A stretch of 64,000 nucleotides of DNA from Lepidodermella squamata (lineage: Eukaryota; Animalia; Gastrotricha). Under the pieces are notes generated by a model. That model was given only the letters and a program-made list of their open reading frames with translations. It had not been told where the DNA came from and ran no database searches. A program made the translations under genes and the position numbers. Shown here in pieces: positions 4,430 through 60,410 of the stretch (positions within the stretch are counted from its first letter, which is position 1; every line of letters begins with the position of its first letter). Location: the NCBI GenBank assembly GCA_047495785.1, contig JBLDXI010000007.1:2976001-3040000 (forward strand). The letters are read 5' to 3'.

Positions 4430-6145
4430 ATGGAAGATCACGACAGTTCTATATGTCGCTCCGTGAAAATCTCTGGGAAATGTGCGACGGATACGCCCGA
4501 GTTTCGGACTTTAATGGCCCAACAATTCGACTGGTTAGCTAATTCCGGGCACGCCGGCCTTGAAGACATGAAACTGGCCTCGGCGACTGATCACCGCGAT
4601 TATATCGAGCTAGTCCCAGAAATGCTTTTCGGAGGCTACTTTCTGGTCTCCACTCTACCGCAAGGCGAGAGGATGGATCTATCAATAGTTGCCAAGGGTA
4701 TTGTTCAAGCTATTACGAATCGAAATTCTTCATCGCTGAAGCGGAAACATGACGATGATGGTGATGACCAAGTCAAATTTGAACCTCTTGACGCTGCTTT
4801 GCTCCATGTCGCCTTCTGTTACAAGGATATGACGATTTCTCGACGAGTTTACGCAGCTAAACTATCAGTGATTCCACCGTGCTTCGCTTCAGCGTTATTG
4901 ATCAGAATGTTTCGAGTGCGAAAATATGTGGAAATGTTAAATATTTCATGTTTCATGTTTCATGTGAATATGTTCAAATATTTCTTTAGAGATTGCCACT
5001 GCTCAACGGCGCTTTTTTTAGTCGAAAACGGGGCGGAGTTAAATGATAAAGATGTCGACGGTAAGTGACGATTTCTTTTCACTAAAATTGAACGAGGGAA
5101 AGTATTAGATACCAATCGTATTTCTCCAAAATCAAAATTAAGGTTGCCGAAAGACGATAAGTTTGGAAAATGTGCACTAAAGGTTTTGTTTAAGAATTTT
5201 GAAACAGTAGCCATAGGCTAGAAACATCAGGTTTTGTGGGCAATGGAGGCTTTTAATAAACATAGCTTTCGCATTAATATAATATATATATGATATAACA
5301 TTATGAAGCGTAATGATTCGTTCATTTTTTCAGGAGCACTTTCTGCGATTATTTTTAGTTTCAAACCACTCCGATACCACTATCAGTCGGCGACATTGTT
5401 GATAATGTTGACAAAAAGTCGCCTGCTATCATTAATAATACCGAAAATGCCTCCAACATCGCTGGGAATCAAATTCGATGGGAAAAGGGCTATTGGCGAC
5501 CGTGATTTGAGCGCGCTGTTACCTGCGATTTGCAACCATCCTATGATTATGGAGAAAATTTGCGATGCATTTCAACACTCAACGAGCCAACCGACTTTCA
5601 GCTGGGCTGAATTATTCGCTGGCTACGAAATATTTGCATCTGGCATTGAAACTGTGGCTAGACAACGCATCAGTCTTACTTTAAAATATATAATTCTACC
5701 ACTGTTACGGTCTGGCTTTACGGCCGGCAATAGTTTTTATTTGTCTTGGTCACCATCTTTGGTTCATTATGGCAGAATTTGGAAAAAACTTAAAAATTGG
5801 CCTGAATTGCAGCAAAAATTTCTCGCAACGGCCGTTCAATGTCTCAGCAGAAGAGCGGTGTACTTACCGGCCTGGATGGAAGAAATTATGCGAGGTCGAG
5901 GAATAGCCCAGGCTGAAATCGATGAAATGAAGATGGGAATTGAAATTTTAAGGCGGCGATATCGTATTATCTCTCTTAAAAATTCAGCTCGTTCGGCAAT
6001 TTTGGGACAACTACCCTACGGCATGAGCAAGCGCAAGTCGGCTATTGACAGCCTGCCTATTCCGAAATGTCTCGCGAATTATCTGCAATTTGATGATCTC
6101 GATTTTACTGTTGATTTGTCGAATATTAACGCATATTGGTTTTGA
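4430..6145 (+). CDS. SOCS-box family protein, copy 1 (exons ~4430-4908, 4990-5060, 5334-6145), with an ankyrin-like segment
   Basis: C-terminus SLKNSARSAILGQLPYGMSKRKSAIDSLPIPKCLANYLQF is SOCS-box-like; LPLLRSGF family motif; G|GTAAGT donor at 5061 and CAG acceptor at 5333; LVENGAELNDKDVDG resembles an ankyrin repeat. The first intron is less certain. Confidence 0.8.
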
Positions 6146-6190
6146 TAATTAGATTGGATATTTGATTGCATGTCTTCATGTTATCTTTTC

Positions 6191-6496
6191 ACCTATGTAC
6201 TGTTGATTTTCATCCTGATTTTTGAAAGCCTTTGGTATCTCAAGTTGACAGCAAATTAAAGTCGGCATCGAGGAATTCGAATCTGAATTTATTTTTTCAC
6301 TTAGGTGAAAAATAGCTGACGATCTCGCCAAAAATCGAATGATCGATCGGAATCGATTTTCGGGATTTTCGGTGAAATGATTGGTTCATCTTTCAAAAAT
6401 ATCAAAATCGAATTCCTCGATGACGACTCTAATTTGGGGTCAACTTGAGATCCCAAACACTTTCAAAAATCAGCATGAAAATCAAATTACATAGGG
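6191..6496. mobile_element. Foldback MITE with ~90-bp imperfect TIRs
   Basis: cctatgta...gattttcatcctgatttttgaaag...catcgaggaattcga is mirrored by tcgaattcctcgatg...ctttcaaaaatcagcatgaaaatc...tacatagg. Confidence 0.8.
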
Positions 6497-6551
6497 CACT
6501 TTTGCCATGTTAACTTAACATTATATAAAAGTCGACATTATATACGACATA

Positions 6552-7001
6552 TATATGTCGTATCGTATAAGGCAATCCCTCCAATGGCACATAGAGATAT
6601 CTCAATGAGCAATCCGAAAATTGCTTTTTGCCTGTTGTTTTCATCAGCCTTCAGGTTTTTGAATTATAATCTATCACATATTAAAGAGCCCGAATAGCCC
6701 CATCGATTGGACTGTTAATTGATTGATAAAGAGTTTAAATGGACCCAGAAGGCCAGAAGACAGCTACTGTGAAAATACGCTGGCTTTTTAAAAACTCATA
6801 AATCACGCAGATATGGAACAAAGTATTAGGGAAAGTGGGTTCTGCTGGATAGGCGAAGGGCTATTCTGTAATCTTGCTTGGTTTCCAAATTTTAAAAACT
6901 GATTAAAATAACTGAAAATGACGTTGGGAACAATTCGGATTGCTCATTGAGATATCTCAATCGGCTATTGGAAGAAATTGCCTTATACGATACGACATAT
7001 A
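6552..7001. mobile_element. MITE with ~65-bp imperfect TIRs, TA-flanked
   Basis: tatatgtcgtatcgtataaggcaat...gagatatctcaatgagcaatccgaa is inverted at 6935-7001. Confidence 0.85.
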
Positions 7002-7739
7002 CAGGTGCGTGAATAAACGGTGTAATTGACTCGTCGAGAGCGCTCAAGTGGGTTTGCGCGCACCCTGTTACATGGGTTCACATTGCGTGATGCGCATTCG
7101 TGTCTGCGCATATTTCACTTCACGCCCAATCTGCCCTAATTTTCAATTGTCGCTGTTGATGTTTTGTTTACTTCATCATAGCTAACGCAGCAATTTGTTC
7201 AGAGAATAAAGATTGGAATTATTTCTTATTGTTCAACTTTTATGTCATCGATTATTGAGGTGTTCTCGCTGTTTTTCCCATCGCATCATCGAATTGCCAT
7301 TTATTAGCCGCATATCGACCTACCACTAACACTCGTTCCATAATTTTCCATTCCCCCCCCCCTATTTCATTGGCACAACTTCGGCAATGTCCGGCCGCCA
7401 ACTCAGCCGATTATTTCCTTAGTCCTACGGGTGTGCGGCGGGGTCAAAGTACAACTCAAAAAATTGCCCCAGAACTTAGAAAATAGCATTAGTCTGTAAC
7501 GTTCTATGCGTAGCCTTACTTTTCAAATTTTTCAGATTTTTCAAACTATTTTAGAAATTCCAGTATTAAAATAACCTGGCATTTTCAAGATACATTTCAA
7601 TAATCCGGAGAATCTGAAGAATTTGAAAAAATATTCTAACAACTAACTGCATCATCTCAGTAGCGTGAATCATGCTTTGGACTTCCACAAAATTTCCACA
7701 AAATTGTTAAATTTCCTATAGAAATATTTGTCTTGAATT

Positions 7740-7966
7740 TCTTTTCTGATCGACTTCGCTGTTTGTTCGCCGATTTTGACCGCCATAAATTCAGCGATGA
7801 AAGCGCAGCCATCGACCGCCCGAACCGCTCGAAAATCGTCGATTTGCTGATAAACAAATTCAGCCATCTGCCTGCCGACTTCTTCCCCTTCGACCTGATA
7901 ATCGGGCAGATGGCTGTATGCCGCGCCTACATCCCGGATTATGAGAGCAAATTGTGCCGCCTATAT
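7740..7966 (+). pseudogene. Orphan fragment of exon 2 of a SOCS-box family gene
   Basis: LFADFDRHKFSDESAAIDRPNRSKIVDLLINK...IPDYESKLCRLY aligns with LIANFEGSKFSAEQARLDLPNRNRIVEMLIDK...IPQFEQKLCTVY at 9200-9400, then is cut off by the 7967-8265 insertion. Confidence 0.75.
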
Positions 7967-8265
7967 CCCGTATAGAAAAAATAAGCTGGAATGCAACAAA
8001 GTAACATGGAAAGTAGCAATGTGCCACCAACGCAACATGGTAAACCATTTTCCATGTTATTTTGTCGTCCTGACAAGTGGATTTAACAGGTTACGCCTAA
8101 ACATGGCAAGATTTTGCCGTGTTGTTAGCTGTCAAAACCGCTACATGGAATTTTTGCGTCCTGACATGCTATTCTGACATTGGAAACCATGGAGAGCGTT
8201 AACATGTTGAAATTTTACCTTGGAAATTCTTCAACGTGGCATTTTTGCGTCCTAACATGGAATCG
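7967..8265. repeat. AACATGG-motif-rich insertion (probable TE remnant)
   Basis: About 10 AACATGG/CCATGTT-like motifs; the direct repeat tttttgcgtcct(g/a)acatg occurs twice. Confidence 0.5.
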
Positions 8266-9956
8266 GATCGCTCTCAAATCGGCTACCCAGGAATGCAAGC
8301 TGTGAATTCTACAATTGCGAATTTTATCGCTACTCTGGACGTTTTCGAGCTGGACAGCCTCGAACAAATCTCAGGGTCGAGCAACTGGTGGGTTGCGCCC
8401 CTCGACCTAATTCAGCTGCATTTGGCGGTTGATCTTCGCGATTTCGACTCGTTTCAACGCTTGATGGACGCTAGGCAAGACCGCATCTCGCCATGCCTCG
8501 TCTCGATTTTAGTCGAGTCATTCTTCGTCTCGACGTGTCGCTTCGAACCGTTCGCGCGAGCGGCGGCTCAGATAATGGAGCGTTTAGCATCGTTGTGGAA
8601 AATTGGCCAGTGCTGGATGCAATCGTTTCCGAGAATTCACCCTTTTGCTTATGAATGTAAGTTTCAACTAGGTTGATAACTCATTTATTTGTAATGTTTT
8701 AATTTTATTAATTTTCCATTCTCAAAATTTAATTTGTCAAATTTACTTACCTATGCATCTATGCATACAGTGAAAATCAGAAGCTACGCTCGGTCAGGAA
8801 TTTGTTGAGTTGGATCTAAAAATATCTAACACGCGCCCGAACTATTTTTAGATCCAAGCTTGGGTTAAATTCAGCTAAAAAATGAAAAGTGTAACTCGGA
8901 CAGACTAAGAAGTTTTAAAAGTTGTAAAAATTGAAAATTCATAAGGTGCTAATTAATATTCCGAAGCCCCCAAAGTTGGTGATTATCTCAGAAAAATTCC
9001 GGAAAAATTATTTTTGATTTATCGTTACCTTATTCCAACTGCTAAAATTGTTCTGCATTTTTTGGCACTAAACTAAGAATGTCCTAGTTTCATGACACCT
9101 CATGAATGTATTCATACTCTTGAAACTATCCCCCTTCCTTGGAGCTATGTTTGGAGCTGGGTTTCATTTTCATATAATTTTTGCAGTTGAGTTCAGCGCG
9201 CTAATAGCCAACTTTGAAGGCTCAAAATTCAGCGCCGAACAAGCCAGGCTGGATCTGCCAAATCGAAACCGCATTGTCGAAATGCTAATCGACAAGCTGT
9301 GCCACGGGTGCTCCAACTTCCCGTTCGAAAATTTCATGATGCAAATGCTCAAATGCTCAAAGGACATCCCGCAATTCGAACAAAAACTGTGCACGGTCTA
9401 CAGCGCCGCTACAAAGCTTAACGGTGATTTCACATGGCTGAACCTCCTGGAACGGCCTAATTTTTTGCATGTTAACTGGAATGTCGCGTCGAAGTTGTTT
9501 CTTACCGGCCTGTTGCACCTGCTCAGGGCCGGCTTCACGTTTCCTTACTTCTACCGAATGAGACCCGATTTTTGCGCCAGGATCCTCCACCCCCTCGTCA
9601 GTCAGCAATTCGACGGCGAGCTGCAAGAGCGGCTGTTTTTCGAAATCTGTCTCCTGTTCCTGAAAAACATTCGCGGCTACGACGTAGGACGGTTGACCCA
9701 TCTGCTGAATGTCCTCTGGGGTAACGGCCCGCAGGCTGGCAGCGTCGAACGCAAGAACAGAATTTCAAGCAATTTCCGATCCAGCTTTCCGTTATCGCTG
9801 CAACATTTTGCGAGGAAAGCAATCCTATGCCGCCTGCCGATGGGCTTGCCACAACGAGGCAGGGCTATAACGAGTCTGCCACTATCACTGCCGATGCAGG
9901 AATATCTGCATTATGGCGATGTCGCCGCAAAAATTGATCAAATTCGAAGCAATTAA
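8266..9956 (+). pseudogene. SOCS-box family copy 2, 5'-truncated (exons ~8266-8656, 9187-9956)
   Basis: Family motifs LHLAVDLRDF...ISPCLVSILV; T|GTAAGT donor at 8657; intact SOCS box FPLSLQHFARKAILCRLPMGLPQRGRAITSLPLSLPMQEYLHY; lacks the N-terminal His/Cys region seen in paralogs. Confidence 0.65.
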
Positions 9957-11330: not shown

Positions 11331-12728
11331 ATGCAAGCTGAAATCGAGCTATGCTGTCAAAATGGCAAGAAAATGAGTCCCGAATGTTTGATAAACAACT
11401 TTCAATTCGGGAAGGATTTTCATATGTGTGCTGATGACTTGATTTCTCAGGCTGCGAAGAAACTTCAATGTGTTGTCGGTTCAACGCCTGACCAATCAGA
11501 ATTCAGCTATATTTATTTAATGCGCCTTTACTACCGAAAATGCTTGAAAAGCCGAAAAACAGAACTGCTGAAAGCCATCCTGCAAAACTGTGTGGACATT
11601 GCTACCAAAGAGGTGGACGAGCCACGGAATAAAATGCCGAAAATTGAAGCGAAATTGATGGTTCGAGATGTTGTAGCCCTCGATCTGGCAGTTCGATGCC
11701 ATGATTTCGAGATGTTGAGCTGCTTGATCGAGGCGAAAAGACTAGCCATACCTTCTTGTCTTGTTTCAATTTTGGTTGATACCTTCTTCGACCGTCATTT
11801 TTTTGGCGAGAACCACATGGATGCCTGTTGCCCCCGGACGTTGGAAATTTTAGCCGGGTTATGGACGATTGGCCAGCCATGGATGAGTTGGGATGAACCG
11901 CGTAATCTTATAATGTTCTATTGGGAAGGTAATTTCACATTAATCCAGTATTATTTAATCGATATTTCCGGGAATTTTCATTCTTTTAGACCTTTTGGCT
12001 AGCTTTTTTACCGGATTCGAGACAAATCGAGCTGTTGCTGAACTGGACTATCCACATCGTAATAAAGTCATCGATTTGTTGATTGGTGTGTTTCTCCGTT
12101 CTACGGCAGATATTCACTATCCAGCCATGATCCTTCCAGCCGTTTTCTCCGCTTCTTACATACCTAAATTCGAGGAGCGCATTTGCGATCTATTCACCCT
12201 GGCTCGAGATCACTTGGACATGTTCGATTTTATTGATATGCTGACGTATTTTGACTTCTCCCTCGAGGTGAAGCTTCCATACACGAACAAAGTCTTCAAT
12301 TTCGCATTCTTGCCTGCTATTCGAGCTGGTTTGACATTCAACCACCGCTACCCTGCTTCCAAGCTCAATGGCTGGCTGGTTGTTATTGCTCGGTCTGAAT
12401 TTTTGCCGTCTGAAATGTCACAACGGCATTATTTCAAGTTCGCGCTTTGTTTTCTTGATTTGAATGGTTACAATCCGGTGAAGCTTGAAGAAATGTTCAA
12501 GGCTGAGTGCCAAATTGGTTACGGGAGAGATTTTGATGTTGAAAAACGAATTCTAGCATGTTCTATTCAATGTACCCGTTTTCGCTGGAAAATTTTGCCC
12601 GAAGAGCAATTTTGACTTCATTACCTGTTGGCCTCTTTGCTCGACGAGCTGCAATTCAAAAGCTTCCACTGCCTGAAAGTTTGCTGCGATATCTCGACTA
12701 TGCCGACTTGGAAATCGAGATTGGTTGA
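11331..12728 (+). pseudogene. SOCS-box family copy 3 with a frameshift just before the SOCS box (exons 11331-11928, 11990-12728)
   Basis: After ~12555 the box MYPFSLENFARRAILTSLPVGLFARRAAIQKLPLPESLLRYLDYADLEIEIG* lies in a different frame from the 11995 ORF. Could be an assembly indel. Confidence 0.75.
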
Positions 12729-15397: not shown

Positions 15398-17473
15398 ATG
15401 ACTAGCCTTGAAAAATTGCATTCGGCTTGTCGTCTCGCGGATGGTTCGGAAGGATGCCCGTACAAGTCTCCGAATTCATATGCCCCCGTTGCAGACTGCA
15501 TCCAAGCTCTTCTCACTGCCATGCTAACAGATAAAGGCTTTGCGAATGAAGACGTCACTTTTTCGGCCGAGAAATACGACGAAATTCGATGTAAAATGGA
15601 GCCATATTCCGTGCTGAAGGTTATGCCTTGCGCTATTTTCGGCTGCGTCCACTTGCGAATAGAAAATGATGCCATTTTTCACCGAGATCTCATGTCATGG
15701 CTGTTGGATGCTTTGACGAGCAAACATTTTAACCAGAAATCTACGGTTTTAACTCCTCAAGATGCGATCACGCTTTACTGGGCCGTTTCACTCGACAACT
15801 CAACGGCTTTTGAGTCAGTCTACTCGAGAGTTCGAAAGCTCTTATCGGCGTGTTTTTCAAAAAATTTGCTCGACGTTGCTTTCAACGCGGATTGCGGAGT
15901 GTTGATGGAAGATATTGAAAGCATCGAAGTTCATGTAGCGTGCTCTATTGCCGCGCTTTTGATTGCCGATGGCGTTAAAACTACAGGATCCGAAGACGTG
16001 GCAAGTATGTGAATGGTCATTTCGGGCTATTTCCGGCGGTTAAATTATTCAATTCGTAATGAATCGAATTTTGCGGAATTAAACTCGGTATCAAAATTCT
16101 GCATGAAAAAATTCCTTTCGGCAAGCAATCTAAAAATTTCTTAGAAAATTGGGACGGATTTTTCATTTGAATTTCGATATTTTTCATATTTTCCATTTTT
16201 TTATAATAAAAATTTTATTTTGTAAAATCGATACTTGAAATCGATATCGGCATTGTATAGGCTGAAGTATAAATCTATACTGACCGCAAACTGTGGCTAT
16301 TATGAGATCTATAAGTTGGGCATTGGGCATGATAACAAAAAATTGAGATTCTAGTAAAAACTTGAAACTCGAAACACTTGAAATTTTGTGGGAAAATTAA
16401 GATTTGAGCCTTTAATTTAGTGCTGGAGCCATTTTAATATACTGTGTGTACTTACACCACCCAGTTGTAAGATTTGGTAAAAAAAAATCCAGCTTTTTGC
16501 GAATTTTGACGTCCCAGCGACCAGCGGACCAAATTTTGAAATTTTGAACAGTAATAAAAATTCGATATTAATCGATTTTTCTAGATTGGTCATTGAGCAT
16601 TTCGATTGTGGAAGAATATACACTATTTCGATGCTAAAATTCGAGGCGAACTTCGCAAAATTTGTTTTTTTTTGTGAATCGAAAAATCTAAACGCTGACG
16701 ATCTACTGATGACTTTTTTTGAAGATTTCGACCTGATATTTTTATTTTTTTCAGAGATGATGTATCACCTTTGCAGCGAGCTCGATTTTTCAGTTGCGTC
16801 TCCTTTTCACATACCCAAATTGGAGGCGTGCAACAAGTTGATAACAACGATGATCGCAAGGTCAGAAAACGGGCCCAGCGCCGACGACCAGGCGATTTTC
16901 GAAGACTGGCTGAGCCACATGCTGCCAATCATCTCCTGCAATCCTTCGATAGTTGAACGATTCACGCGGACCTCGGAGCGTAGGCAAATTCTCTGGGAAT
17001 CCATATTCCGCCATGAAGACACTCCAACCGAATTCGCTTTGACGTTCGAATTATCAGTGAAACACCTTCTATTACCTCTACTACGATCTGGTTTCAAATG
17101 CCGCGGCACCTTGCGTAGGAACATGCAATACTCCGGTCGATTCGTCGCGCATCTGCTAGCTTTCGGCGATTATAAAGAATCGCAGAGAAAGTACATTTAT
17201 TTCACGCTTCATTTTTTCAAACCGAAGAGTCTCGATTTGCGAAAAATTTGGTCGGGTTACAGCAGTTTTCGATATGAAAATAAGCCGGCGAGTTTATTCG
17301 AACCTTTCACCGGCGTCTACCCGTTTTCTCTGCAATTTTTCGCACGGTTGAAAATCACGAGCTGTCTCCCGTTTGGTCTTGATAAACGAGCGAAGGCGAT
17401 TAGCAGTCTTGATCTACCTCCGTCGATTCTCGATTTTTTGAATTTCAAAGACTTTGAAACGACTTTGATTTGA
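15398..17473 (+). CDS. SOCS-box family copy 4 (exons 15398-16004, 16755-17473)
   Basis: Phase-1 GT-AG intron at the conserved family position; SOCS box YPFSLQFFARLKITSCLPFGLDKRAKAISSLDLPPSILDFLNF. Confidence 0.85.
16220..16460 (+). repeat. Dispersed intronic repeat (second copy ~60851-61093)
   Basis: Shared ttgtaaaatcgatacttg(a/g)aatcgatatc...gcatg(a/g)taacaaaaaatt.gagatt..agt. Confidence 0.7.
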
Positions 17474-18664: not shown

Positions 18665-20051
18665 ATGACCGACAAACGCAACTTGCATGGTAAATGCATA
18701 CCAGCTCCGGAGTCATGCCTGGTCACGTCGCGCCAGTTTCGTCAGTCTATAGCTGATACCATTCGAATTCTTCTAGCAGAAGCCTTGAAGGACAGCGGGA
18801 AATCAGCTGAAGATTTCTTACTCGAAACCTGCTGTGATAACGATGCCCAAACGTTCACGCATCAGTGGAATGATATGAATCTCATGCCATGCAAGTTGTT
18901 CCGCTGTTTTCATGTGAAAATCCAAAAAGCAGAAAGAGATAGCCAACAGTTGTTGCTCAAATGGCTACTTAAAAGCTGCAAGCGTCATCTTCAGCTTGAA
19001 GGTTCAGAAGAATTCACTGCTTTGAATGCTTTGGCTCTTTATTGGGCTGTGTCCTTCGATAATTTCAAGGTTTTCGAGAAAGTTTTCGTTGCGAAACAGC
19101 TACAAATCCCGAATTGCTTCAAGAAGCATTTGCTTATTGTTGCTTTGGACATTGACGCTGGAGTTCTGCGGAATTTCTCATCGCTCATTGGTGAATTAAC
19201 GCCAGAAGGTATCAGTATCGCGGAATCCATTGCTGAACTTTTAATCCGAAGTGGAGTCAAGTCAAAAGACTCGGATAACATTGGATGTGAGTTGGAAAAA
19301 TCACCTATCCTCGACTTTTCCAAATTCGCTTTTTTCAGACATGGTCTGCAACCAGAGCGACCGTAGCAGTTTTTCTTTAGTGTCAACAGCTATCAAATTT
19401 GCTGGAGAAGTACCGGATCCGAGCGAGCAGGAGTTTTTTCAAAGATCACTGAAGCGATTTCTTTGGTACGCTGACTTCGACCCTTCTATCGTGGAATGGT
19501 TTTGCCAGTGTTCAGCCACGAAGAAAATTGAATGGTATTCCGTGTTTCACCTTATAGAAGACTCGGATGACTTCAACTACAGCGATTCAATTGATCGGCA
19601 GTTTATTGACTCCGCCAAATTACTTTTGTTGCCTCTGCTGCGAGCTGGTTTCAAATGCGCGGATAATTTCGACGATTCACTAGTCACCGAGCTCTTTGTA
19701 GAGCACTTGCTATTCGATTTGAGTGATCAGAAGTCGATTCAGAAGCTCTACTTGAATTTTGTTCTGCATTTCGTGGAGTTCTCAATACTTCGCTTTGAGG
19801 AAATGGCAGAATTGTATGATGATGTGCGATGCCCAGATGAGTCAATGGATCCCTGTGAGATAGCCGCATGCGTTTCAGCTGTCTATCCGTTCTCGCTTCA
19901 GGGTTTTGCTCGAATTAAAATTCTGGAGTGTCTGCCTTTCGGCTTGAAACGCCGTACAGCGGCTATTGACAAGCTGAATCTTCCGACCTGCCTGAAAGAA
20001 TTTCTCGATTTCGCTGATTTCGAGTCAGCCGTGGTATCATTGAAGCGCTGA
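18665..20051 (+). CDS. SOCS-box family copy 5 (exons 18665-19286, 19339-20051)
   Basis: T|GTGAGT...TTTCAG 52-nt intron joins the two ORFs in frame; YPFSLQGFARIKILECLPFGLKRRTAAIDKLNLPTCLKEFLDF. Confidence 0.88.
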
Positions 20052-24104: not shown

Positions 24105-24714
24105 ATGATGGGCGAAACTGACCATTGGGCATGTATGATATGCGACCCTGAGATATGCCTAGATGGGTTGGTCCAGTTTCGAAAATCAATGGCGAACATG
24201 ATACGAAGCCAAAGCCGTTTCCTTTGAAACTTATAACCTCACAGTTTTATACTGCGAACACGAATGTTTACGCGCAGATCTAAAGCTGATGCCTTGTGGA
24301 ATTTTCGGTCGATCTTGCAGCCAAATTTCTCCTTTTACCGTTGCTTCGATCCGGTTTCAAAAGCCACGAGAATTCTGATGCTGTTTCCCTTTGTGGAGAC
24401 TTTTGAGCAAGTATTGGAATTTGACGATTCGAAAGTGTTGTTCAAAAGGCAGAGCAAAAAATGTACCTGAATTATGGTCTCAATTTCGCAACACTTCAGC
24501 GCCTCGACTTTGCAAAATCGCAGCATATTATCAAGAATACTCGGAGAAAGTGACAGTCAACCTTGAAGACATTGCGAGCCTTTTTCTGAGGTCTACCCGT
24601 TCTCGCTTCAGAGCTTGGCTCGAATCAGCATTCTGGAAAAATTGATCCATTGAGCAGCTTGAACTGGACCCTTGCATGAAAGCTTTCCTGAATTTTGAGG
24701 CAGCATTGAATTGA
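24105..24714 (+). pseudogene. SOCS-box family copy 8, internally deleted and decayed
   Basis: Exon-1 motif ADLKLMPCGIFG is fused at ~24310 directly to exon-2 motif DLAAKFLLLPLLRSGF; later VYPFSLQSLARISILEK and LELDPCMKAFLNF, with stops and frameshifts. Confidence 0.8.
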
Positions 24715-47300: not shown

Positions 47301-50300
47301 AGGCCCAATTCCTTGTCATGATGTCGCGCTCCAGGTCGCTTGACAAAGTGGCTTTCGTTGGAAGCGATCGTCATGGCATACTCGAAGCAATCGACGCCAT
47401 TCTTATGGAAACGTCTGCTTTTGATGAAGCCACGAGATCAAGACTGCGCCAAATGGACATCCTACCCCAGGCTGATATGGTCACTGTCAACATCGACCCT
47501 GTTTTCCTTTTTACCAACTCTGTTCTGCCCCAAATTGATTTCGGGGTCGTCTATCATATTGTCTCTGAAAGCAGACCTTTTGCATCGTATATCGGACAAA
47601 CGGAAAGATCCATTCATCAACGCCTTGGGGAGCACAACACAGGTAATATTTGCAATTTGCTGATTTACCGTCAATTATCAATTTCTCATTTAGGAAGCGG
47701 ATCAAATTTCACTCGCGGTGATCAATGGGTTTTGTGTACTATCATTCATGGTTTTCCAGATGACGCCAGTCGATTGCGCATGGAGCGCGACATTCACCTT
47801 GCAATGCGAGGTGACATATTTCCGTGGCAAATGCGCGCCGTTCTACGTCAGCAAGTCGCCATTTTTAACAACGACAATCCCTTCGCTATCCGTCTGTCAG
47901 TCGTTGCTTTTTGTGACCTCAATGAACAACACGTCAGATATCTTGCTCGGCATTTGCCTCCTGGGACCGTCATTGTTGGTCGTCGCGTTTGTTGCTTTTT
48001 AGTTCACATGGATTTGAATGTGTCAGCTTTCTTTTTAGGAGTGATTCCATGTGAACAGATTTTTCGGCATGTCGTCTTTTCCTCGCGACATCTATGTCAT
48101 CTTGCTTGTTCTACCGTTTCAATCGTTCCCTTGTCCAAATTTTGGAAGATGGTTTTTTTCTAATTTACTTCAAATAAATAATACTCATGCAAATCTTCTG
48201 ATTTGTTATTTTATCAGACATCAATGTCATATCGCTGATATTTTTTTCTTTTTTAATTCCTTATTGTCGTCATTGTGCTAATTTGACAAGCACACATCGT
48301 CATGCATGACCTGATTAGCAGCGACGTCGCTCACGCACCTTTTACCCTCAAATGTTAAGCATGACAAATAATAAAACTTGTTTACATTTTGCTGCAATAG
48401 AGGGAGGGGGTTGATTCTCCCCTACTTGCAGGAGGGGAGAGTTCAGGGGTGGTCATCAACAAGTCATAGACATTGATTACATCATACTCTTGTCAGTTAC
48501 ATACCAAACACAACTCTGCTGGTATTTTTATTTCTGGATTTTGACACTTGGTCAGGCCTCGGAGGGCAATGGGAAAATGATGTTAATCAGAACGGCCCCA
48601 ACTGGGACTGGAATCAAGGCAGTAAGATTTTTTCAAATTGAAAAATTTGGTACCAACTCATTTGAGCTAGATTCTCGGGGTTACTATGCGATGACTGCAG
48701 ATAAAATAGCACCGACGTGCACTAGCCTGTACACTGAAATAAGCTCGCCCTTCATCAAACCAGGAGGGCCGAAATGTTTCCGCTTCCGTAGCTATCGATC
48801 CGCAGTATCGAATAAAATTGAGGTTGTGCCAGGTCTAATATCGAGCGGTGCAATAACCGCTGTACCAGGATGGACTATAACGGGAAACGTAGACGGAACT
48901 GCATTGACATGGAGAACAATCCAGGTCGAATTAAATTACCAAGTTGAGTACCGAATCCTCATCCGTATTTGGAGTGCTTGCGACGGTAAAGGGCTGGGTA
49001 ATCAAGCAGTGGACGATTTCATGCTATTTGACGGAACTTGTACTATTACGCCAAACTCGCAATACGCAACCTATACAACAAACAGCATTCGACCGCTGCC
49101 ATCTTGGCAGGATGCGACCGATTCGATAAACGACGCCAATTTTTTCTACTGTACTGACCTGAACTTACCGCAGTGGCGACCGATAAGATTCAGCGATGAC
49201 GTTTGGACGTGCGACTCATTCGACCTACCAGCCACGCATCAGCGAACCGGCCCTCAGTCAGACTACACAGGCGAGGGCAACTACTTGAACGCCGATAATG
49301 ACCTGGGCACTTCTTTGACGGGAGTCACCCGGCTGAGCGGTCCAGCAGTTCCCGCGGGACTCCGCTGTGTCATTTTCCACTATTTCCAGTTCGGCTACGA
49401 CGCTGGTGAATTCCGTCTCAGCGATCAAACCGGGCGATTCTTATTTGCTGTGCAGGGTGATCAATTGCCAACGTGGCGGGAACATCGCATCTTGCTGAAT
49501 CAGCCAACGCCAACTGTACTGACCTTTACGAGTAGCTCGGCTCTCTTCGACGGTTTCACTCACTATCAAAGATTCGGCGCCATTCAAATCGACGACATCT
49601 ACGTCAGAAATGGAACTGATCTTTGCATGGGATACATGGATTGTGACTTCGATTCTCCCACGAGTATTGCGGACTGCGGGTGGCGTCAGAATGAAACTGA
49701 CGACGGCGACTGGGTACGTAACAAAGGTGAAACTCCAGCTGGAAACGGATTAACAGGGCCAAATGCTGACCAGCGGACCGGAGCGGGCCATTACTTGTAC
49801 TTTGACGCAACCGAAGTAAAGCCTGGGGCACGAGCTAGAATTCACATGCCACCAATCGCTGCTGGGAACTCCTGCCTCACCTTTAATTACCATATGTGGG
49901 GCAGCGATGTCGGATCCTTACGAGTTTTCTACGTTCCCCAAAACGCATCATCAACCTATGTTGGAAACTTCCCTCCCTATGGCGAAATTCAAGTTTTTGG
50001 ACGATCAGGGTCACAGGCGAACTATTGGCTGCGGGCGATGGTTCCTTTGCAGTTGAATCACCCTCAAATAATGACTTTCGAAGCCATCCGAGGCAACGGC
50101 GACCGAGGTGATATTGCGATCGATGATGTTGTTCTTCTGCGTGGTTCATGTCCTCAAGATCGGTCATTTTCTTGCAGCTTCGAGCGAGGCGATACTTGTG
50201 CCTGGATCAACGATCCAGCAGCAAACCGCAAATTCACCGTCCGCCGCGGTAAGACTCCGGGCTCCCCTATAAGCGGCCCGGAAGGTGATAACACTGGCGC

Positions 50301-51804
50301 TTATGCAGGTGGTTTCTACGCCTATGCTCCTGGAACAGGCGGACCAGCTGGCTCTTTCGCCAGCCTGGTAAGCCCCACAATACCAGGCGCATCGACTGTT
50401 TGCTTTCAGGTTTACTACAACCTTCGTGGGAGATCAGTCGGAACTTTGACCATATCAAGAAACTCAACCGTTGTCTACAGGATCCGTGCTGGCACTACTG
50501 GTTATGATTGGCGGCGCATTTCTACAACGATCAGCTCCAACTCAGCTTTCAACATCCGAATTGCGTATTCGGCTTCATCGCAATACGCTGAGCTCGGTTT
50601 GGACGACATTAGTGTTACAGACGGCCCTTGCGGCTCGAGTAAATCCATTATTTCGCTTTGTCCATAATTTTTCATAACTTCATTTAGATTCGAGCCCGAC
50701 AACCAATTCATCATCTATTAATTCATATCAAATGCAAAGCGGCTTTGCGGTATACCAACACTGTGTGGCCAACTACACCGGCTTAACTTACGTTGCGTGC
50801 CTGCAACTCTGCCGATCTAATGGAACATGCAGATCCTTCAATTTCGACACCAGCACTGGTCTCTGCCAGCTCAATGACCGCGTTCCGGAATCTAATCCCT
50901 GGAACTTCAACACCGCACCGGCAAGTGTTTCCATCACCAGGGTTGCCTCGGCATTTTCGCAGCTGGAAACTGTAAGCTGTTTCACGGCAGAAATTTGTTT
51001 GAGGGAAAACATACTTTGTCTTAACAGAGATTGCGTCACATTTGCTCCCTTGATTCAACGCGGTGCACTTTGACCAGGAATTGTATGGTCATGCCACATA
51101 CGGATATGTATGTCTGCAGATGTTTAGAACCCGAACAGAGCTGTTACATGCCTCGGGACTGCACTAGCCTGTTCACCAATGGCTATCGTGCTAGTGGAAC
51201 CTATCTTATCCAGCCAGCACTAACTTCAATTGCAACCATGACTTACTGCGAAATGGATAATGTAAATAACAAGGGCTGGACTGTTTTGGCCAATCGAAAT
51301 AATGGGATCACAAGGTTCAGCAATCGCCGCCTTGATGAGTACCAACAGTTCTTCGGTAATCCGAACGGGGAGTATTGGCTGGGTTTGGACACCATGTCCC
51401 AACTGACAAGCCAATTCAACTATACCTATGCATTTGATGGGAGCATTGGTGTTGGATCGTTTCCTTCGATCTCTGGTGGTCCAAGTCAGTCGCTGAAAAT
51501 CTCACCAGCCAACGACAACTACCGCATCGGTCTGACAGCGACTGGCACAATGGCCGCTACCATGAATAATCAAATATTCTTGGCTAAAGACTCCCCGCCA
51601 TCCGCAAATTCAGCCTGCCTGGCATCGTATGCCTACTCAGGCTGGTGGTACGCTGCCTCGCCTACCTGCATCAATGGGTTGCTCACCGGGCCCTACCGTC
51701 CGGGTGAAGCCCTGTCGACGGGGAAGTTCGGCATGTACGCCAATGATTTCAACAACACAGCAGTGGGCTTGTCGGCCATGCGATGGCGAATCACCCGTCA
51801 GTAA
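29318..51804 (+). CDS. Large secreted multidomain lectin-like protein: SP-CUB-CUB-LamG/pentraxin-like x3-MAM-CTL-MAM x4-PAN-EGF-like-fibrinogen C; one apparent frameshift near 33465
   Basis: CUB (GYIQSDRYPNYY..C; GVLTSPFFPDPYPTNVQC), LamG (GWWPLDG..DDISGN), MAM (CDFD..CGW..D.GDW; IAIDDV), CTL (CPKGWIQFGRKCY; WASGQP), PAN (CLQLC..CRSFNF..CQLND), FBG (PRDC..SGTYLI..FGNPNGEYWLGLD..GWWY). Exons approximately 29318-29620, 29674-30193, 30246-32444/32465, 32507-32757, 32807-32897, 32951-33202, 33259-33537, 33581-33614, 48671-50638, 50688-50971, 51028-51804. Confidence 0.8.
33866..33893. other. Perfect 11-bp GC-rich hairpin near the left end of the Helitron-like element
   Basis: GCCTCTCCCCC-tagcgt-GGGGGAGAGGC. 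Confidence 0.8.
34027..34108 (+). ncRNA. tRNA-derived RNA polymerase III unit (A box, B box, oligo-T terminator); not a canonical tRNA
   Basis: A box TGGCTTAGTGG at 34034-34044, B box GGTTCAAATCC at 34078-34088, GCGT/ACGC terminal pairing, then TTTTT and (TTTTTA)n; no good anticodon stem. Confidence 0.65.
36389..48163 (+). CDS. Spliced RepHel-type polyprotein: RanBP2/NZF Zn finger - OTU protease - Cys-rich regions - HUH Rep - PIF1-like helicase - GIY-YIG nuclease
   Basis: CSICSIPNFNARTHCARC; OTU RGDCQFYAV, WGD, HYQAL; Rep YFYTVTAND, RIEFQ..GNKCHVH, YLVKY; helicase GPPGCGKT, FEEIGL, GDYCQLMP, RKQYPF..ATTHRVMG, AQFLVMMSR; GIY-YIG GVVY..YIGQT..RLGEHN..ME. The GT-AG junctions I checked from 37614 to 48163 keep the frame open; the small 5' exons are less certain. 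Confidence 0.85.
48416..48440. other. GC-rich hairpin near the right end of the Helitron-like element (candidate 3' termination hairpin)
   Basis: TCTCCCCTACT-tgc-AGGAGGGGAGA (10/11 pairs), about 250 nt after the RepHel stop. Confidence 0.7.
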
Positions 51805-53512: not shown

Positions 53513-55177
53513 ATGACTCCGGTCGACCACGCTGGAATGCCATGCCGTGCTGTTGACGGCCCTAGCCCTTGCAAAATCGAGTCGATCGATTTTCTGGAAT
53601 CGATTTCAGACGAGTTGCGCCACATTGCCAGTGTAACATATTATGAATCAGCGCATCAACATCTCGTCGCAGAATACGTCCACGATCCTAAATCGAAGCA
53701 TCAAGGTGACGAATGTGTCCAGTCTTGTTATCCAATTTTACCAGAAGAGGTCTTCGGCCGCTTTCACGTGGTTCTGAGTGAGGATTACCGCGACAGCGAA
53801 GCTGTTGAGGCTTTATTGAGAAAAGTCATGGAACCGTGGTACTCTTACAGCTACGGTTCCGTGCCGGAATTTCTAGCTCTCGATGCCTTGGCTTTATACC
53901 TCTCTGCTTGTATCGATGAACCAAATGATTTCAGCGCTGTTTACTCGGCGAAGCAGAAATTCATCCCGCGTTGTTTCGCATCTCGTCTCCTTGAGGTGGC
54001 TCTTGATTTTCAAAATGGCAGCCTATACGAACACCCAGACGAAGAATCGGGATACGACTATCACGTTGCTTATTCGATAGCATACGATCTACTCCAAAGT
54101 GGCGTCAAATCTGCGAGCTGTGAAGATGTTGCCAGTATGTTTATACTTTGCATATACATTTTCATTACTGAAACAGAAGTCGAGACAGTTGGGGAGTAAG
54201 AAATGTATAAGAGAAAAATCAAGAAAATAAAGCCTAACAGTTTAGGAACTGCAGAATCTGTTTAGCAGAATATTTTATACCAAAAATAAGCTTTTCCCGA
54301 TAAGCCCTGTTGATAACAGGTCGTTAAAAAGGTTCAGAAATTGTCTTTGTAGAGATTTCCAGATGGCAATAGCGAATGAACCCTTGGAGCTAATTTCCCA
54401 TGATTTTCAAGATCAGTTGAAGACTATTTTATACCGTACCGTTTCCTAGGCTTGGTTTTCGATGTTTACGAGCGTTTCGAGCCTAGATGGCGAAATTTTC
54501 CTGGGGAGACTGAAGAAATTGTTAACCTTATCGACTTGATGATGGAAGTATCTTCATCGAAAACGCCCAGACCCGAAGATCAGCTAACCTTCGAAGAATC
54601 CCTCAGTTACATGTTCCCAGCTGTCGCTTACTGCCCAGCTATCATGGCAAGATTCACGCAGAAATCTCCAACCTGGATAATCAGCTTCTTCGCCCCGTTT
54701 TTGTTCACGGAAGAAGAACCGGGTGGTTTCGAAGCTAGATGCCTGCCGATATTGAAGTTTCTGTGCTTACCCCTGCTGCGCGCTGGTTATCGAAGTAACG
54801 AAAGTTTTTCGGATCCCAATGTCGTCCAGCAAGTCATGAATCACTGTGCTTTGTTGGAAAGTGAAGCCATAATTACCTATATCAGCTACGCTTTTCAACT
54901 TATTCAACTTGGCGGTTTTCGAATGGGCGTTTTAGCGGAATATAGAGATACCTTTGAAGATATTCGCAAGGGTTCTTCGGACGTTCTGCTTCTTATTGGT
55001 TCATGTTACCCGTTGAGCCTTCAAAATTTGGCTCGCAGGGCTTTCTTACACACTTTGCCTAAAGGCTTGGAATTGCGTCGAAGTTGCATTGAAAAGTTGG
55101 ATACTACCAAGCGTTTGAAGGAATATCTCAACTTCTGTGATCTCGATTTCGAACCGAACTTCAATTTTTACGAGTAA
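53513..55177 (+). CDS. SOCS-box family copy 11 (exons 53513-54134, 54450-55177)
   Basis: A|GTATGT donor, CCTAG acceptor; YPLSLQNLARRAFLHTLPKGLELRRSCIEKLDTTKRLKEYLNF (the LP of the cullin box is replaced by TT). Confidence 0.85.
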
Positions 55178-55827: not shown

Positions 55828-57272
55828 ATGGCTAATTCATCTAGAAACATCCATCAATTTTGCTCCAGAAATAGCTCTGGACTTTGCCCGCTAGAATCGC
55901 CGGATTTTCATGGAGAAATCGTCAACCTTCTAGTCCAACTGGTCGATTCATGTGCGAAACGTATCCCCTTGAGGAGAAACGCCGTGAAAGTAACAAAAAC
56001 GGCTGGCAGAGACAGCATGATGCTGATTCCTACTCATTTATCCGAAGGTTTTGTCGTCGATTTCAAGCCGTTCAATTCGAACAAACGGGCTGAATTTGTC
56101 CGTATCCTGCTGAAGCATAGCATTGAAGTTCTGAAAGAGCAAGAAAAAACCGAGGAAATCGAAGAATTCCGCCCGATTCACGCGTTCATCTTATATCTGG
56201 CGGTTTCACTCGGGAGGACGAGGGAATTTTCGGAATATTTCGAGAAATTTCTCGACTTCATCCCGCGTTGTTTCGTTCGACTATTGCTGTTTTCTGCCGT
56301 GGAGCCGCGTTATTCGAACAAAATCATATGCCGACCAGTTGACGAATCGATCAAAGCTGCGATAGCGCTGATTTTGTTAGACAACGGAGTATCCTTGAAT
56401 CAAAATTTTGATTGTTAGTTAGAATTTTTCATTTTTTACAATTTTTGCAATTTTTCATAAAAATTTCATTGTTTATTTTTTTATTTTATTTTTGGAATTT
56501 TTGAAATTTCTCCAAATTTTTACCAGATGCGATTTTGAAGCTGTGCGAAGGTTTAAAATATCCTGCAAAATCTGCTACGGATCATCTGGAAAAAAATCGA
56601 TTATTGAAATTACTCGTTTCGAAATCGTCGTTGGCTGACCTTGATCGCATTGCTAGTCAAAATTTCGTTAACATCGGCCATTACTTGGAAACAGTTTGCT
56701 TCAACGCTTATTATATGGATATTATTTGCAAGGCGACAGGATCGAATTTTGCGGAATTTTTCGACTATTTTCAAAATTTCCAGCCCGCTGCGTTGATGCC
56801 ACATTTATCTGAAAAATTGATCGACTGGTCGCTGAAAATTCAAATTTTACCCAAGCTGCGATCTGGCGCTACAGCACTTTATTGCTCGAATTATCCGTAT
56901 TTTTCAAGCTCATGTTCGGGCAAATTTCTCGAATTATTGAACACTATCAACAACTATCCCGATATTCAGAAGCGATTCGCTGTTTTCACGCTTCAGTTTT
57001 TCAATTTCGAGAGCTTGATGTTGGAAATTCGGCCATCTTCAAATGGGAGAATTTGCGAGATGATGCTAGGATTGTACCCGTTTTCGCTTCAAAGCGCCGC
57101 TCGGCTTGCTGTTCTGAAACGACTGCCCTGTGGCCTGGAAGATCGTGCGAAAGCGATCAAAGGTTTGCAGCTTCCAAAAATTTTGCAGCAGCTGTTGAAC
57201 TATGAGGATTTGGATTTTTACCTCGATCCTGTTCTGCAGGAGAAATTCGCCAAAAAAATGCCCAGTATTTGA
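55828..57272 (+). CDS. SOCS-box family copy 12 (exons 55828-56413, 56527-57272)
   Basis: T|GTTAGT donor, ACCAG acceptor; YPFSLQSAARLAVLKRLPCGLEDRAKAIKGLQLPKILQQLLNY. Confidence 0.88.
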
Positions 57273-58045
57273 TCGACAGTGTTATTATCTTTTTTCTAAT
57301 TTTTCGTCGACATTTTGAACCAAAATTGTGATATCTTGTTCGCGCTAAAATATCTCAATAAAAAATGAAAAATGAAAATAAAATAAAATTCCTGCCGATT
57401 TTAAAATGACCGTCGTCAAATGAAAAATGGGAGTTGCCGATGATCTGCATCTCAAAAAGTGGGCTGACTTAAAGAAGGACGATTATGAATTCCATGATGC
57501 TTCTAGTCAGTTTTTTTTTACAAATTTCGATTTTTTTAATTCCATACATTTTGGATGCTGCCTTCCTCCATCCTACTTATAATGCGGGGAACTCCGCACA
57601 GCGTAGCCGGAAGTTCAGGTTAATATGCAAGCTGGAGTATAAATCGTAGACTAACCGCTGATATAGCAGAAAATATCGTAAATTTTGAAATATTTCGAAA
57701 ATCTCGGAAGTTCTTTGAAAAGGTCCAAACTTGAACAATGTTATATAAATCTTTAAAGTTCACGATGAATATGCTCTGATGAATATCTGAATATTCTCGC
57801 TCTATATTTTCTGATTCAAGTTTATTATTAAAACTATTTATTGATAGTAATTTTAGAGGCTTTCAATATCGGCTTTCTTTTCTTGTCCACTATCTTTACT
57901 ACGGTCGACCCATAAAATTGCAGACTTCATATGATCAGCTCGCGGTAATCAAAATTGCCTAGAAACCATGCGGAAATCGGGCGCTTGCCTTTGCTGCGCG
58001 CACACCTACGACGCCCGCTTGAAATGAGCAGTCATCGCTGCGACA

Positions 58046-58119
58046 ATTTATTATGGTATATTGTTCTTTTATATTTTTGTGACTGATGGACAAATAAATT
58101 TGAATTTACAATTTACAAG
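58046..58119 (+). mobile_element. Very short 5'-truncated retroelement-like insertion with candidate 7-bp TSD
   Basis: Matches 35-105; TGCGACA flanks both sides (58039-58045, 58120-58126). Confidence 0.6.
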
Positions 58120-58824
58120 TGCGACACGGCGCGAGGCTGTGACCGTGCGGCACTTTCGCGTGCGACTGTCGTGCGTGACAGTGCGCTCGTGACGCAAAAT
58201 GTCGCGGCCGTCGCAGTGCGACTAAATACACTCCCATTAATTAGGAAAAAAATAATTATCCCGCAGAAACTCATACAGTAGTTAACCTCCTTAACCTCTA
58301 ATTGCGCATTATTAAGACTGTTTTAGTGGGATTGAGAAAAGTGTAACATTGCACGTGAACTCTCAAGACGCACCTGTTGCCGATAGCAGAAGTCCTATTA
58401 CTTTTTCCAGCGAGTAAACCTGAGTCATCAGACGTTTATTTCTGATGTAAATAGAATCGACCCTTTTTATTGACTCATGAAATGATTGCTCATGACAATG
58501 AATTTTGCGATCAGTTGGCTACTTGCCCGTTATCTCGGCTTGACTTTCGTGACAATTTATTGGACTATTTCCTCCACCCATAATTTTCTAACCATCGAAA
58601 CCGTGGAAATAATTCTTTGTGCGTAAAAATGAATGATGTTTGAGTTCGACATTATACACACATCAGTCATCTTTAATTCACATGCCAATTATTGAATGAA
58701 ATACTACAGTATTTTCCCAGTACATATAAAGGCGAGCCTATTAGCCCATCTATCTATAATATGAATTTCGACCGAATCGACAAATTTTTTTGCTCTAAAT
58801 TTGCATCTAGTGAGGCTATATTAA

Positions 58825-60410
58825 ATGGCTAACAGCATTCACCAATTTTGCGAGAAGGGTGATTCTGGAATGTGCCAGCTCGAATCGCCTCATTTCCACC
58901 AAGAAGTTGTCGACCTTCTAAAACAGTTAGTCAATACCTGTGCCAGACGCATTCCGCTGAAGAAAAACGCCGTGAAAGTTACAAAAACGGCCGGAGAAGA
59001 CAGCATGATGTTGATCCCTACTAACATCTCGAACGGTTTCCTCGTCGATTTCAAGCCGTTCAACTCGAACAAACGGACTGAATTTGTTCGAATCATGCTC
59101 AAGCATAGCATTGAAGTTCTGAAAGAGCAAGAAAAGACGGATGAAATCGAAGAATTCCGCCCGATTCACGCGTTCATCCTATACCTAGCCGTTACATTCG
59201 GCAACACTAGTGTATTTTCGGAGAATTTCGAGAAATTTCGCGATTTCATCCCGCATTGTTTTACTCGACTTTTGCTGTTCTCTGCCGTTGAGCCGCGTTA
59301 CTTGGACAAGAAAATGTGCAATTCAGTTAACGACACGATCAAAGTTTCTATTGCATTGATGCTCATCGACCATGGACTAAACTTGGAGGCGACATTCGAT
59401 TGTAAGTCTTGGCCGATTTTTTTCATCATACTTTACTTCAACCAAATTTAAAAATTTAATTCATTTTTTTATTTTTAACCGTTCATTTTAAAATTTTAAA
59501 ATTTCAATTGTATTCCATTTTTAATAATTTTATTTCTAATTAATATCAGCAATTTAATATAATTTTTTAATAATCATGAAAACTTCAAAAATGCACTGAA
59601 ATTTCTAAAAACAATTGTCTCTTGTTCGCAGAATTTAATATATTTTTTTATATTTTCATTTTTCCATAAAAAATAGATGCGATTTTCAAACTGTGCGCAG
59701 GTTTGAAATATCCCTCGAAATGTGCTGGCGACGACCTTGAAAAAATTCGGCTATTGAAATTGCTTCTCGCTAAATCTCCGTTGGTGGATCTTGAAAGACT
59801 TTATAGACTGAACCATTTTGCTGTTGGACTTTATTTGGAGACAGTTTGCTTCAATGCCGAATATCTGAATATTGCTTGCAAGGCGATTGGGTCGAAAAAA
59901 CTCCCGGAATTTTTCGACTACTTCGAATTATTCCATGGCGCTGTTATGGTGCCACATTTAGCTGACAAAATTATTGATGGGTCCATGAAAATGAACCTTT
60001 TGCCCAAGTTGCGATCAGGAGCGATAGCTCTATATTGCTCGAATTACCCGTACTTTTCAAGCTCGTGCTCGGGGAAATTCGTTGAAATTTTGAACACTAT
60101 CAACAGCTATCCCGATATTCAGAAGCGATTCGCCATTTTCACGCTTCAATTTTTCAATTTCGAGAGCCTCATGTTGGAAATTCGACCATCTTCAAATGGG
60201 AAATTTCGCGATATGATGTTAGGATTGTACCCGTTTTCGCTTCAAAGCGCTGCTCGTCGCGCTATTCTGAAGAAATTACCTCATGGATTAGAAGAGCGAG
60301 CGAAAGCGATCGAAGATTTGCAACTTCCGAAAACGGTGTGCAAGATATTGAATTACGATGACCTGGACTTCGAATGTGATCCTGCCCTCTTTGCCAACTC
60401 GCGCCGATGA
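58825..60410 (+). CDS. SOCS-box family copy 13 (exons 58825-59401, 59677-60410); close paralog of copy 12
   Basis: T|GTAAGT donor, ATAG acceptor; YPFSLQSAARRAILKKLPHGLEERAKAIEDLQLPKTVCKILNY. Confidence 0.88.

Follow-up and report, generated by a model that had tools for sequence, protein, structure and literature searches.

What is encoded by a long run of divergent, tandemly repeated genes in the genome of the gastrotrich Lepidodermella squamata, and how did so many copies arise? The genes lie between positions 4430 and 60410 of a 64,000-nucleotide stretch of contig JBLDXI010000007.1 (positions 2,976,001 to 3,040,000; G000:C7:2976001-3040000), which is referred to here as the window. An interpretation made without database searches, called here the sequence-only reading, had proposed a repertoire of SOCS-box adaptors for intracellular defence. 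Our analysis indicates that these loci form one subfamily, with genes of two exons, within a lineage-restricted and very large family resembling the ASB proteins, which combine ankyrin repeats with a SOCS box, and that they are probably cullin-5 (Cul5) substrate receptors. SOCS-box receptors confer specificity on Cul5 ligases, and a 121-Mb animal genome that has no fewer than 150 SOCS-box loci would possess a Cul5-type receptor set of unusual size. The ASB architecture itself is known; what sets this family apart is an N-terminal domain beyond the ASB plan and the exceptional copy number. The two exons were analysed separately, with full-length, intron-less single-exon relatives serving as whole-protein proxies for the spliced product, and all genome-wide counts refer to the 121-Mb, 151-contig assembly.

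The array consists of co-oriented two-exon genes with a common intron position

Open reading frames (ORFs) were listed, and hidden Markov models (HMMs) built from the window were run against its six-frame translation. Twelve loci (A1 to A12), all on the plus strand, were found within the array, each with an exon-1-like block of about 200 codons and an exon-2-like block of about 240 codons (Table 1). Nine of the loci are intact and three (A2, A3 and A7) are damaged; with one degraded relic and one exon-2 fragment added, the window has 14 pieces of the family, and 5 of these are damaged or incomplete. The same six-frame search gave no family match on the minus strand of the window, and none between 28.3 and 53.5 kb. 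The sequence-only reading had described 13 co-oriented loci plus 2 fragments, with at least 4 copies damaged. The common orientation and the extent of damage stand, but the count is corrected to 12 loci with one relic and one fragment, the relic having probably been taken for a locus.

Taking the best frame-preserving GT..AG pair, a phase-1 intron is found at a homologous site in 11 of the 11 loci that have a complete exon 1, directly 3' of an LL..G[VA]....D motif. Among the loci with a clear acceptor, a group from which A7 is excepted, the intron is 48 to 720 nt long. This common position had been recognised from the sequence, as had the motifs AL.LY.AVS, IP.CF, LPLLR.GF and YP.SL..AR..I...LP.GL..R..AI..L.LP..L..YL.F, all of which are visible in family alignments of window paralogs that are only 17-44% identical to one another.

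The array extends beyond the window. Close to the window's upstream edge, a 94-codon ORF at 666-950 gives a weak match to the exon-1 profile (independent E-value 0.026) and is probably the tail of the upstream part of the array. Downstream of the window, two exon-1 copies, L008 (G000:C7:3044696-3045235) and L009 (G000:C7:3054340-3054879), lie 10 kb apart and are nearly identical across the compared stretches, an indication that about 10 kb of the extended array was duplicated very recently.

The genes encode a C-terminal SOCS box

A Pfam scan of the exon-2 ORFs detected the SOCS_box family (PF07525) above its curated cut-off of 23.5 bits in eight of ten (25.2-35.1 bits), with A10 and A12 falling just under it, so that the earlier assignment of a SOCS box is upheld. 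The same family was above cut-off in all five of the full-length single-exon relatives scanned, and no other Pfam family was detected in them.

A SOCS box comprises a BC box and a Cul box. The BC-box consensus, S/T/P-L-x-x-x-C/A/S-x-x-x-hydrophobic, contacts Elongin C. In the exon-2 alignment, every copy has a BC box of the form S-L-x-x-x-[A/C]-R-x-x-[I/V/F], with Ser193, Leu194 and Arg199 invariant and the cysteine variant found in A6. Several positions of the Cul box are also invariant among the ten aligned exon-2 sequences, the proline of an L-x-L-P core is present in eight of the ten, and the L..YL motif downstream of the core is retained in most copies. A single-sequence search with the SOCS region of A9 gave no match.

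The body of the protein resembles an ankyrin-type stack

No significant Pfam family was detected in the exon-1 ORFs, and the Pfam ankyrin models gave nothing significant on the five full-length relatives. A superfamily profile was constructed from an alignment of 25 single-exon relatives, taken from 26 fetched out of the same genome. Alignment with hhalign placed window exon 1 on positions 5-162 of this profile (probability 96.9%, E 1.8e-10) and window exon 2 on positions 191-428 (probability 99.7%, E 5.5e-27), and the relatives and the window genes have the N-terminal motifs C...C.l..F, DA..L..A, IP.C and LLPLLRAG in common. When the superfamily profile was compared with the PDB, it matched ankyrin-repeat chains (DARPins, RNase L) with E values of 1e-11 to 1e-5, as well as ASB8 (E 4e-4) and ASB7 (E 7.5e-4). 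One segment of the profile, Gve.LLknGA.pn, is a textbook ankyrin motif.

Structural models point in the same direction. The AlphaFold model of one relative, L039 (predicted local distance difference test score, pLDDT, 87; predicted TM-score, pTM, 0.86), contains an N-terminal alpha/beta unit of about 100 residues, then about six helix pairs, then a C-terminal helical box. The top Foldseek matches of this model are complexes of ASB9 with Elongin B/C (3zkj, 3zng and 6v9h; E 4e-4 to 9e-4, probability 1.0, TM to target 0.42-0.57), with ASB8, ASB7, the ANK domain of MIB1 and gankyrin ranking next. Its neighbours in the ESM Atlas are ankyrin and ankyrin plus SOCS-box clusters that include ASB1 and ASB17 (0.92-0.96). 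An ASB-like fold, in which an ankyrin stack sits on a SOCS box, is therefore seen in the model of this relative; what is seen for window exon 1 is paired helices with weak ankyrin matches. The model of A9 exon 1 (pLDDT 82, pTM 0.82) has an alpha/beta domain at about residues 19-110 (a helix at 19-39, three strands and a helix at 93-110), followed by paired helices at 119-192. Exon-1 residues 1-114 retrieved only scores of 0.87 or less from the ESM Atlas. At three positions (C6, C14 and C151 as numbered in A9) cysteine is kept almost without exception throughout the superfamily.

The sequence-only reading had treated the region preceding the SOCS box as an uncharacterised substrate-binding region. 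This description no longer holds for most of it, which is a degenerate ankyrin stack by profile, fold and Atlas matches, the first 110 or so residues excepted. Since the body is of this type, the family is ASB-like.

A large family restricted to this lineage

The Pfam SOCS_box model is above its cut-off at no fewer than 150 of 212 candidate loci in the genome, and the exon-2 profile has at least 150 matches among 227 candidates. Most of the exon-2 matches listed span only the C-terminal 140 positions of the profile and each fall within one open frame of 400-510 codons. For the exon-1 profile there are 32 matches, 25 of them strong (E 2e-69 to 2e-10). Eleven of the strong matches are in the window, and the other 14 are either at 2.86-3.07 Mb on the same contig (C7) or on C46. 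Four of the seven weak matches (E 2e-5 to 4e-4) lie elsewhere, on C24, on C16 and in distant parts of C7.

A word search with exon 2 of A4 (residues 67-309) gave no match, and a word search with the superfamily profile gave only emu ASB3 (E 1.6e-4, 16% query coverage). Because a claim of lineage restriction rests on absence, an exhaustive all-against-all HMMER search was also made. About 35 proteins of single-domain size (227-541 residues) were found at E < 1e-20, with generic long ankyrin proteins ranking below them, and about a third of the 35 match from the first few profile positions through the SOCS box, with E values down to 4.8e-84. The ten top proteins all come from ENA metagenome assemblies, where they are encoded on eukaryote-like contigs beside ordinary genes, and the closest of these metagenomic relatives shares 52% identity with one of the copies of the present genome. 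The presence of full-length relatives on these contigs indicates that related organisms carry the superfamily. A full exon-2 match to the window subfamily was found in 0 of the 48 best HMMER matches, and thus there are no known orthologs of the window copies outside this genome. With emu ASB3 as the only named match by word search and metagenomic sequences as the ten closest relatives by HMMER, these results agree with the earlier suggestion that the family is lineage-specific. Literature searches found no report of a large invertebrate expansion of SOCS-box or ASB genes, although their coverage was incomplete and novelty is not proven thereby.

One of the metagenomic contigs (ERZ23486787 scaffold_4114; L073:27-1536) carries two adjacent same-strand genes of 197 and 299 residues, the second with a SOCS box. 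The pair resembles a further superfamily gene that is divided into two exons, and it lies beside a full-length single-exon member, P0002.

A candidate set of Cul5 substrate receptors

Like the vertebrate ASBs, the family has a C-terminal SOCS box made up of a BC box and a Cul box and preceded by ankyrin-type helical repeats. The likeness extends to the searches, in which ASB9 bound to Elongin B/C is the best structural match of L039 and ASB3 the only named sequence match. There are also clear differences. Orthology to any of ASB1-18 was not detectable, ASB3 being the sole named match, and the repeats of the array family are too degenerate for Pfam. The array family carries an additional alpha/beta domain at the N-terminus, some 110 residues long, with the three conserved cysteines and a fold that was unmatched in our searches, and its Cul5 core is mostly L-x-L-P rather than LP-Phi-P. 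Finally, the at least 150 SOCS-box loci of this genome compare with 18 ASBs in humans (PMC4812663, PMC7280518), where the ASBs are the largest family of Cul5 receptors (PMC7280518).

On the reading that we favour, the spliced product would be a protein of about 440 residues in three parts. The first would be the alpha/beta domain of about 110 residues, and the second a stack of about six degenerate ankyrin-type helical repeats, with the intron falling after the second or third repeat. The third part, the SOCS box, is predicted to dock on Elongin B/C and on cullin-5/Rbx2, by analogy with ASB9, ASB7 and ASB8. A substrate held by the repeat stack, and perhaps by the N-terminal domain, would then be ubiquitinated, and different paralogs would select different substrates. 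The analysis establishes domain content, homology, gene structure, the patterns of duplication and of selection, and the presence of a Cul5 gene; the contacts with Elongin B/C and Cul5, the role in a ligase and the substrates we infer by analogy. Most of the SOCS-box loci in the genome are ASB-like with the extra N-terminal domain, and their function is read from domain content only. The family may be regarded as a naturally occurring collection of ankyrin-type binders, diverged from one another but all joined to one constant ligase-docking module, and it should be useful for asking how repertoires of cullin-RING receptors expand and what they recognise.

Duplication history and selection

A maximum-likelihood tree of exon-2 proteins places the window copies in four old clades. 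Clade 1 contains A1 and the upstream copies L001-L005 and L023-L027 (support 100/100). Clade 2 contains A2 and A3 with L031, L028 and L035 (95/85), clade 3 contains A4/A8, A5/A9, A6/A7 and A10 with a pair of copies on C46 (95/93), and clade 4 contains A11/A12 with the next copy downstream (95/97). Two sister pairs, (A4,A8) and (A5,A9), indicate that a block of two genes was duplicated. For most window paralogs the terminal branches are 0.3-1.4 substitutions per site. The adjacent upstream copies belong to the same family, the window being distinguished from them by its four old two-exon clades and by the 25-kb block that interrupts the array. The array has grown over the long term by tandem and block duplication, and frameshifts and deletions remove copies from it. 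The four old clades, the block duplication, the recent duplicates, the frameshifted copies and the relics bear out the birth-and-death history that had been proposed for the array.

Synonymous sites are saturated in nearly all window pairs (proportion of synonymous differences, pS, > 0.7), and given this saturation the region-wise ratio of non-synonymous to synonymous substitution (dN/dS, or omega) is usable only for close pairs and for the A1 clade. For A11/A12 (dS 0.75-0.96) omega is about 0.2 in all three regions, for A4/A8 it is 0.1-0.2, for A6/A7 0.28-0.45 and for the C46 pair about 0.28. The low omega of the informative old pairs indicates that these are long-lived paralogs under purifying selection. 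The A1 clade, which lies mostly outside the window, is young (dS 0.05-0.4). Here omega is 0.35-0.5 in exon 1, about 1.15 in the body of exon 2 and about 0.34 in the SOCS box, the body and box values coming from two independent young pairs. The body and the box differ (Fisher p 0.003), and some 30-codon windows reach about 1.5, although the excess of the body's omega over 1 does not reach significance (binomial p 0.57). Uniform purifying selection, which, together with one-to-one orthologs, the sequence-only reading had held to be at odds with its proposal, is thus rejected for the A1 clade, whereas the older pairs are uniformly at 0.1-0.3 in all regions. Since that excess is not significant, a relaxation of constraint following duplication accounts for the A1 clade just as well, and the pattern in these sequences fits relaxed constraint and positive selection alike.

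These data may be set beside the proposal that the genes form an intracellular-defence repertoire, a set of diversifying E3 adaptors for viral, microbial or transposon-derived proteins. In its fullest form this would be a Cul5-based surveillance repertoire of more than 150 members directed against viruses, symbionts or transposon proteins, in which the new cysteine-bearing N-terminal domain and the repeat surface are coupled to a fixed box, the repeat surface diversifying. There are precedents in nematodes, which have lineage-specific tandem expansions of F-box and MATH-BTB cullin-RING adaptors, and for which site-level positive selection is key evidence. The gastrotrich family is like these adaptors in being a tandem, lineage-specific set with a conserved docking module, a divergent substrate-binding part and many pseudogenes, and the extreme expansion seen with both the SOCS_box model and the exon-2 profile, the tandem arrays with pseudogenes and the contrast between body and box in the youngest clade all speak for a defence role. 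It differs from them in docking, which would be by SOCS box and Cul5 rather than by F-box and Cul1 or BTB and Cul3, and in that most paralogs here are old and under purifying selection, in body and box alike, whereas the nematode adaptors have site-level positive selection. In addition, the reported roles of vertebrate ASBs are mostly developmental or in muscle or testis. Taken with the equally good fit of relaxed constraint, this leaves a defence role doubtful for the family as a whole, and the surveillance repertoire in its fullest form is a tentative suggestion at best. We continue to favour ASB-like substrate receptors.

Predicted docking on Elongin C and the choice of cullin

The genome contains a Cul5 ortholog, identified from an exon on C38 (G000:C38) that matches human Cul5 with E 4.8e-65, compared with 1e-26 for Cul1. 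It also encodes Cul1, Cul3 and Cul4, which are well conserved like Cul5. Cul4 shares no more than 58% identity with any named protein, lophotrochozoan and vertebrate sequences scoring about the same, and 79% with one ENA protein. A further locus, L064 (G000:C25:1484744-1487219), encodes a very divergent Cul2-like cullin; its closest match in the PDB, to Cul2 (E only 2e-23), is confined to the C-terminal third.

Several observations weigh against Cul5 receptors of the ASB type. An LP-Phi-P core has been stated to be required for Cul5 binding (PMC4812663), and the full core is present only in A1 (LPIP) and A3 (LPLP). The form L-x-L-P occurs in eight copies (A4-A9, A11 and A12), while the sequence is LPLS in A2 and LDTT in A10. 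As the core is complete in A1 and A3 only, recruitment of Cul5 is proposed with a real caveat. Elongin C was not found in a six-frame Pfam search (PF03931), which returned two SKP1 genes only, although its exons may be too short for such a search. The ankyrin-type body is also hard to detect in the window copies taken by themselves: the Pfam ankyrin models gave nothing significant on them (best Ank_3, E 0.28), profiles built from the window only, for exon 1 and for exon 2, gave nothing significant against the PDB, and the ankyrin match of the exon-1 profile was confined to its tail and weak (E 0.05-2). For the A9 exon-1 model, Foldseek gave no match at E <= 1e-3, and the best match of a VIA-wide search, to a TRPM N-terminal region, had a Z of only 6.1.

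The two SKP1 genes, L075 (G000:C32:2552625-2552813) and L076/L077 (G000:C20:2438981-2439229), encode near-identical proteins. One of them is intron-less, with a single ORF of 162 codons, and the other has introns, which suggests a retrocopy.

The incomplete core raises the alternative that the proteins use another cullin or none, either as Elongin B/C binders that act with the divergent Cul2-like cullin or as non-degradative ankyrin scaffolds. The lack of the first proline of LP-Phi-P in most copies and the existence of the Cul2-like gene are in keeping with this, as is the report that SOCS1, in which the Cul5 box is incompletely conserved, does not bind Cul5 detectably (PMC4812663). Against this, the fit of the Pfam SOCS_box model runs over its whole length (positions 1-39 or 2-39), the alignment of the box to ASB8, which takes in the GL.... 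linker, has no large gaps, ASB complexes of the Cul5 type are the top matches by structure, and the Cul5 ortholog is conserved in the genome. We consider this alternative unlikely, and Cul5 the better candidate partner.

Since frames and splice sites have been kept despite synonymous saturation and omega is low, these features show, at the level of sequence, that the genes are functional. It is accordingly very improbable that the loci are mostly decaying, non-functional duplicates or a by-product of mobile elements, because the damage to 5 of the 14 pieces, the giant Helitron-like element within the array and an omega near 1 in the body of the youngest clade are outweighed by nine copies that keep both frames, an ATG and the homologous phase-1 GT..AG, by the omega of the oldest informative pairs (0.1-0.3) and of A6/A7 (0.28-0.45), by a SOCS box that is constrained even in the young clade, and by family matches that lie outside the element.

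Table 1. Family copies and other features of the array. Positions are those of the window; the first position of each intron is its splice donor.
Feature	Position	Strand	Exon 1	Intron	Exon 2	SOCS_box (bits)	Remarks
A1	4430-6145	+	4430-5060	5061-5333	5334-6145	26.0	Intact; canonical Cul5-box core (LPIP); member of a young clade extending upstream of the window
Fragment	7739-7966	+					N-terminal part of exon 2 only, ends in a stop; by eye closely like the start of L031, a copy about 17 kb upstream
A2	8203-9956	+			9177-9956	25.2	Damaged; start ~8203; exon 2 complete; exon-1 homology only at profile positions 112-158 (8389-8529), N-terminal half including the Cys motif missing
A3	11331-12728	+	11331-11928	11929-11989			Damaged; one exon-2 frameshift near 12552-12561 parts the body from a SOCS box that is intact in other respects (LPLP core)
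A4	15398-17473	+	15398-16004	16005-16724	16725-17473	32.8	Intact; sister of A8
A5	18665-20051	+	18665-19286	19287-19338 (52 nt)	19339-20051	33.7	Intact; sister of A9
A6	20466-22189	+	20466-21066	21067-21410	21411-22189	34.6	Intact; sister of A7
A7	22530-23953	+	22530-23130	donor 23131			Damaged; one exon-2 frameshift near 23730-23810, upstream of an intact SOCS box
Relic	24120-24700	+					Degraded whole gene; short remnants of both exons, spread over three frames and with stops; by eye most like A9/A5
A8	25094-26697	+	25094-25700	25701-25981	25982-26697	28.8	Intact
A9	26851-28236	+	26851-27463	27464-27511 (48 nt)	27512-28236	35.1	Intact
Non-family block	29234-51804	+					Interrupts the array, ~25 kb; unrelated genes and a Helitron-like element
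CUB, three Laminin_G_3 stretches, start of MAM	29677-32476	+					ORFs; Pfam; upstream of the Helitron-like element
Giant Helitron-like element	~33690-48460						Inside the array
OTU, weak	37589-38245						Pfam E 2e-4, just under cut-off; in the Helitron-like element
GIY-YIG	47228-48163						Pfam; in the Helitron-like element
Three MAM stretches	48490-50667	+					Downstream of the Helitron-like element
Fibrinogen_C	51031-51804	+					Downstream of the Helitron-like element
A10	53513-55177	+	53513-54134	54135-54449	54450-55177	20.9	Frames intact; under cut-off; Cul5-box core lost (LDTT)
A11	55828-57272	+	55828-56413	56414-56526	56527-57272	26.0	Intact
A12	58825-60410	+	58825-59401	59402-59676	59677-60410	22.7	Intact; sister of A11

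An unrelated block within the array

The GC content of the window is about 0.38-0.48. Between A9 and A10 the array is interrupted by genes that do not belong to the family and by the giant Helitron-like element (Table 1). Within this element, the long ORFs at 39813-41105, 42043-43710, 43215-44141 and 44640-45539 gave no Pfam family at E <= 1e-3. The idea that the SOCS-box copies were carried as transposon cargo was considered and rejected, as there is no family match inside the element. The CUB, Laminin_G_3, MAM and Fibrinogen_C ORFs on either side of it could be parts of one large secreted-protein gene, which the element splits or which hosts it in an intron, or they could belong to two neighbouring genes.

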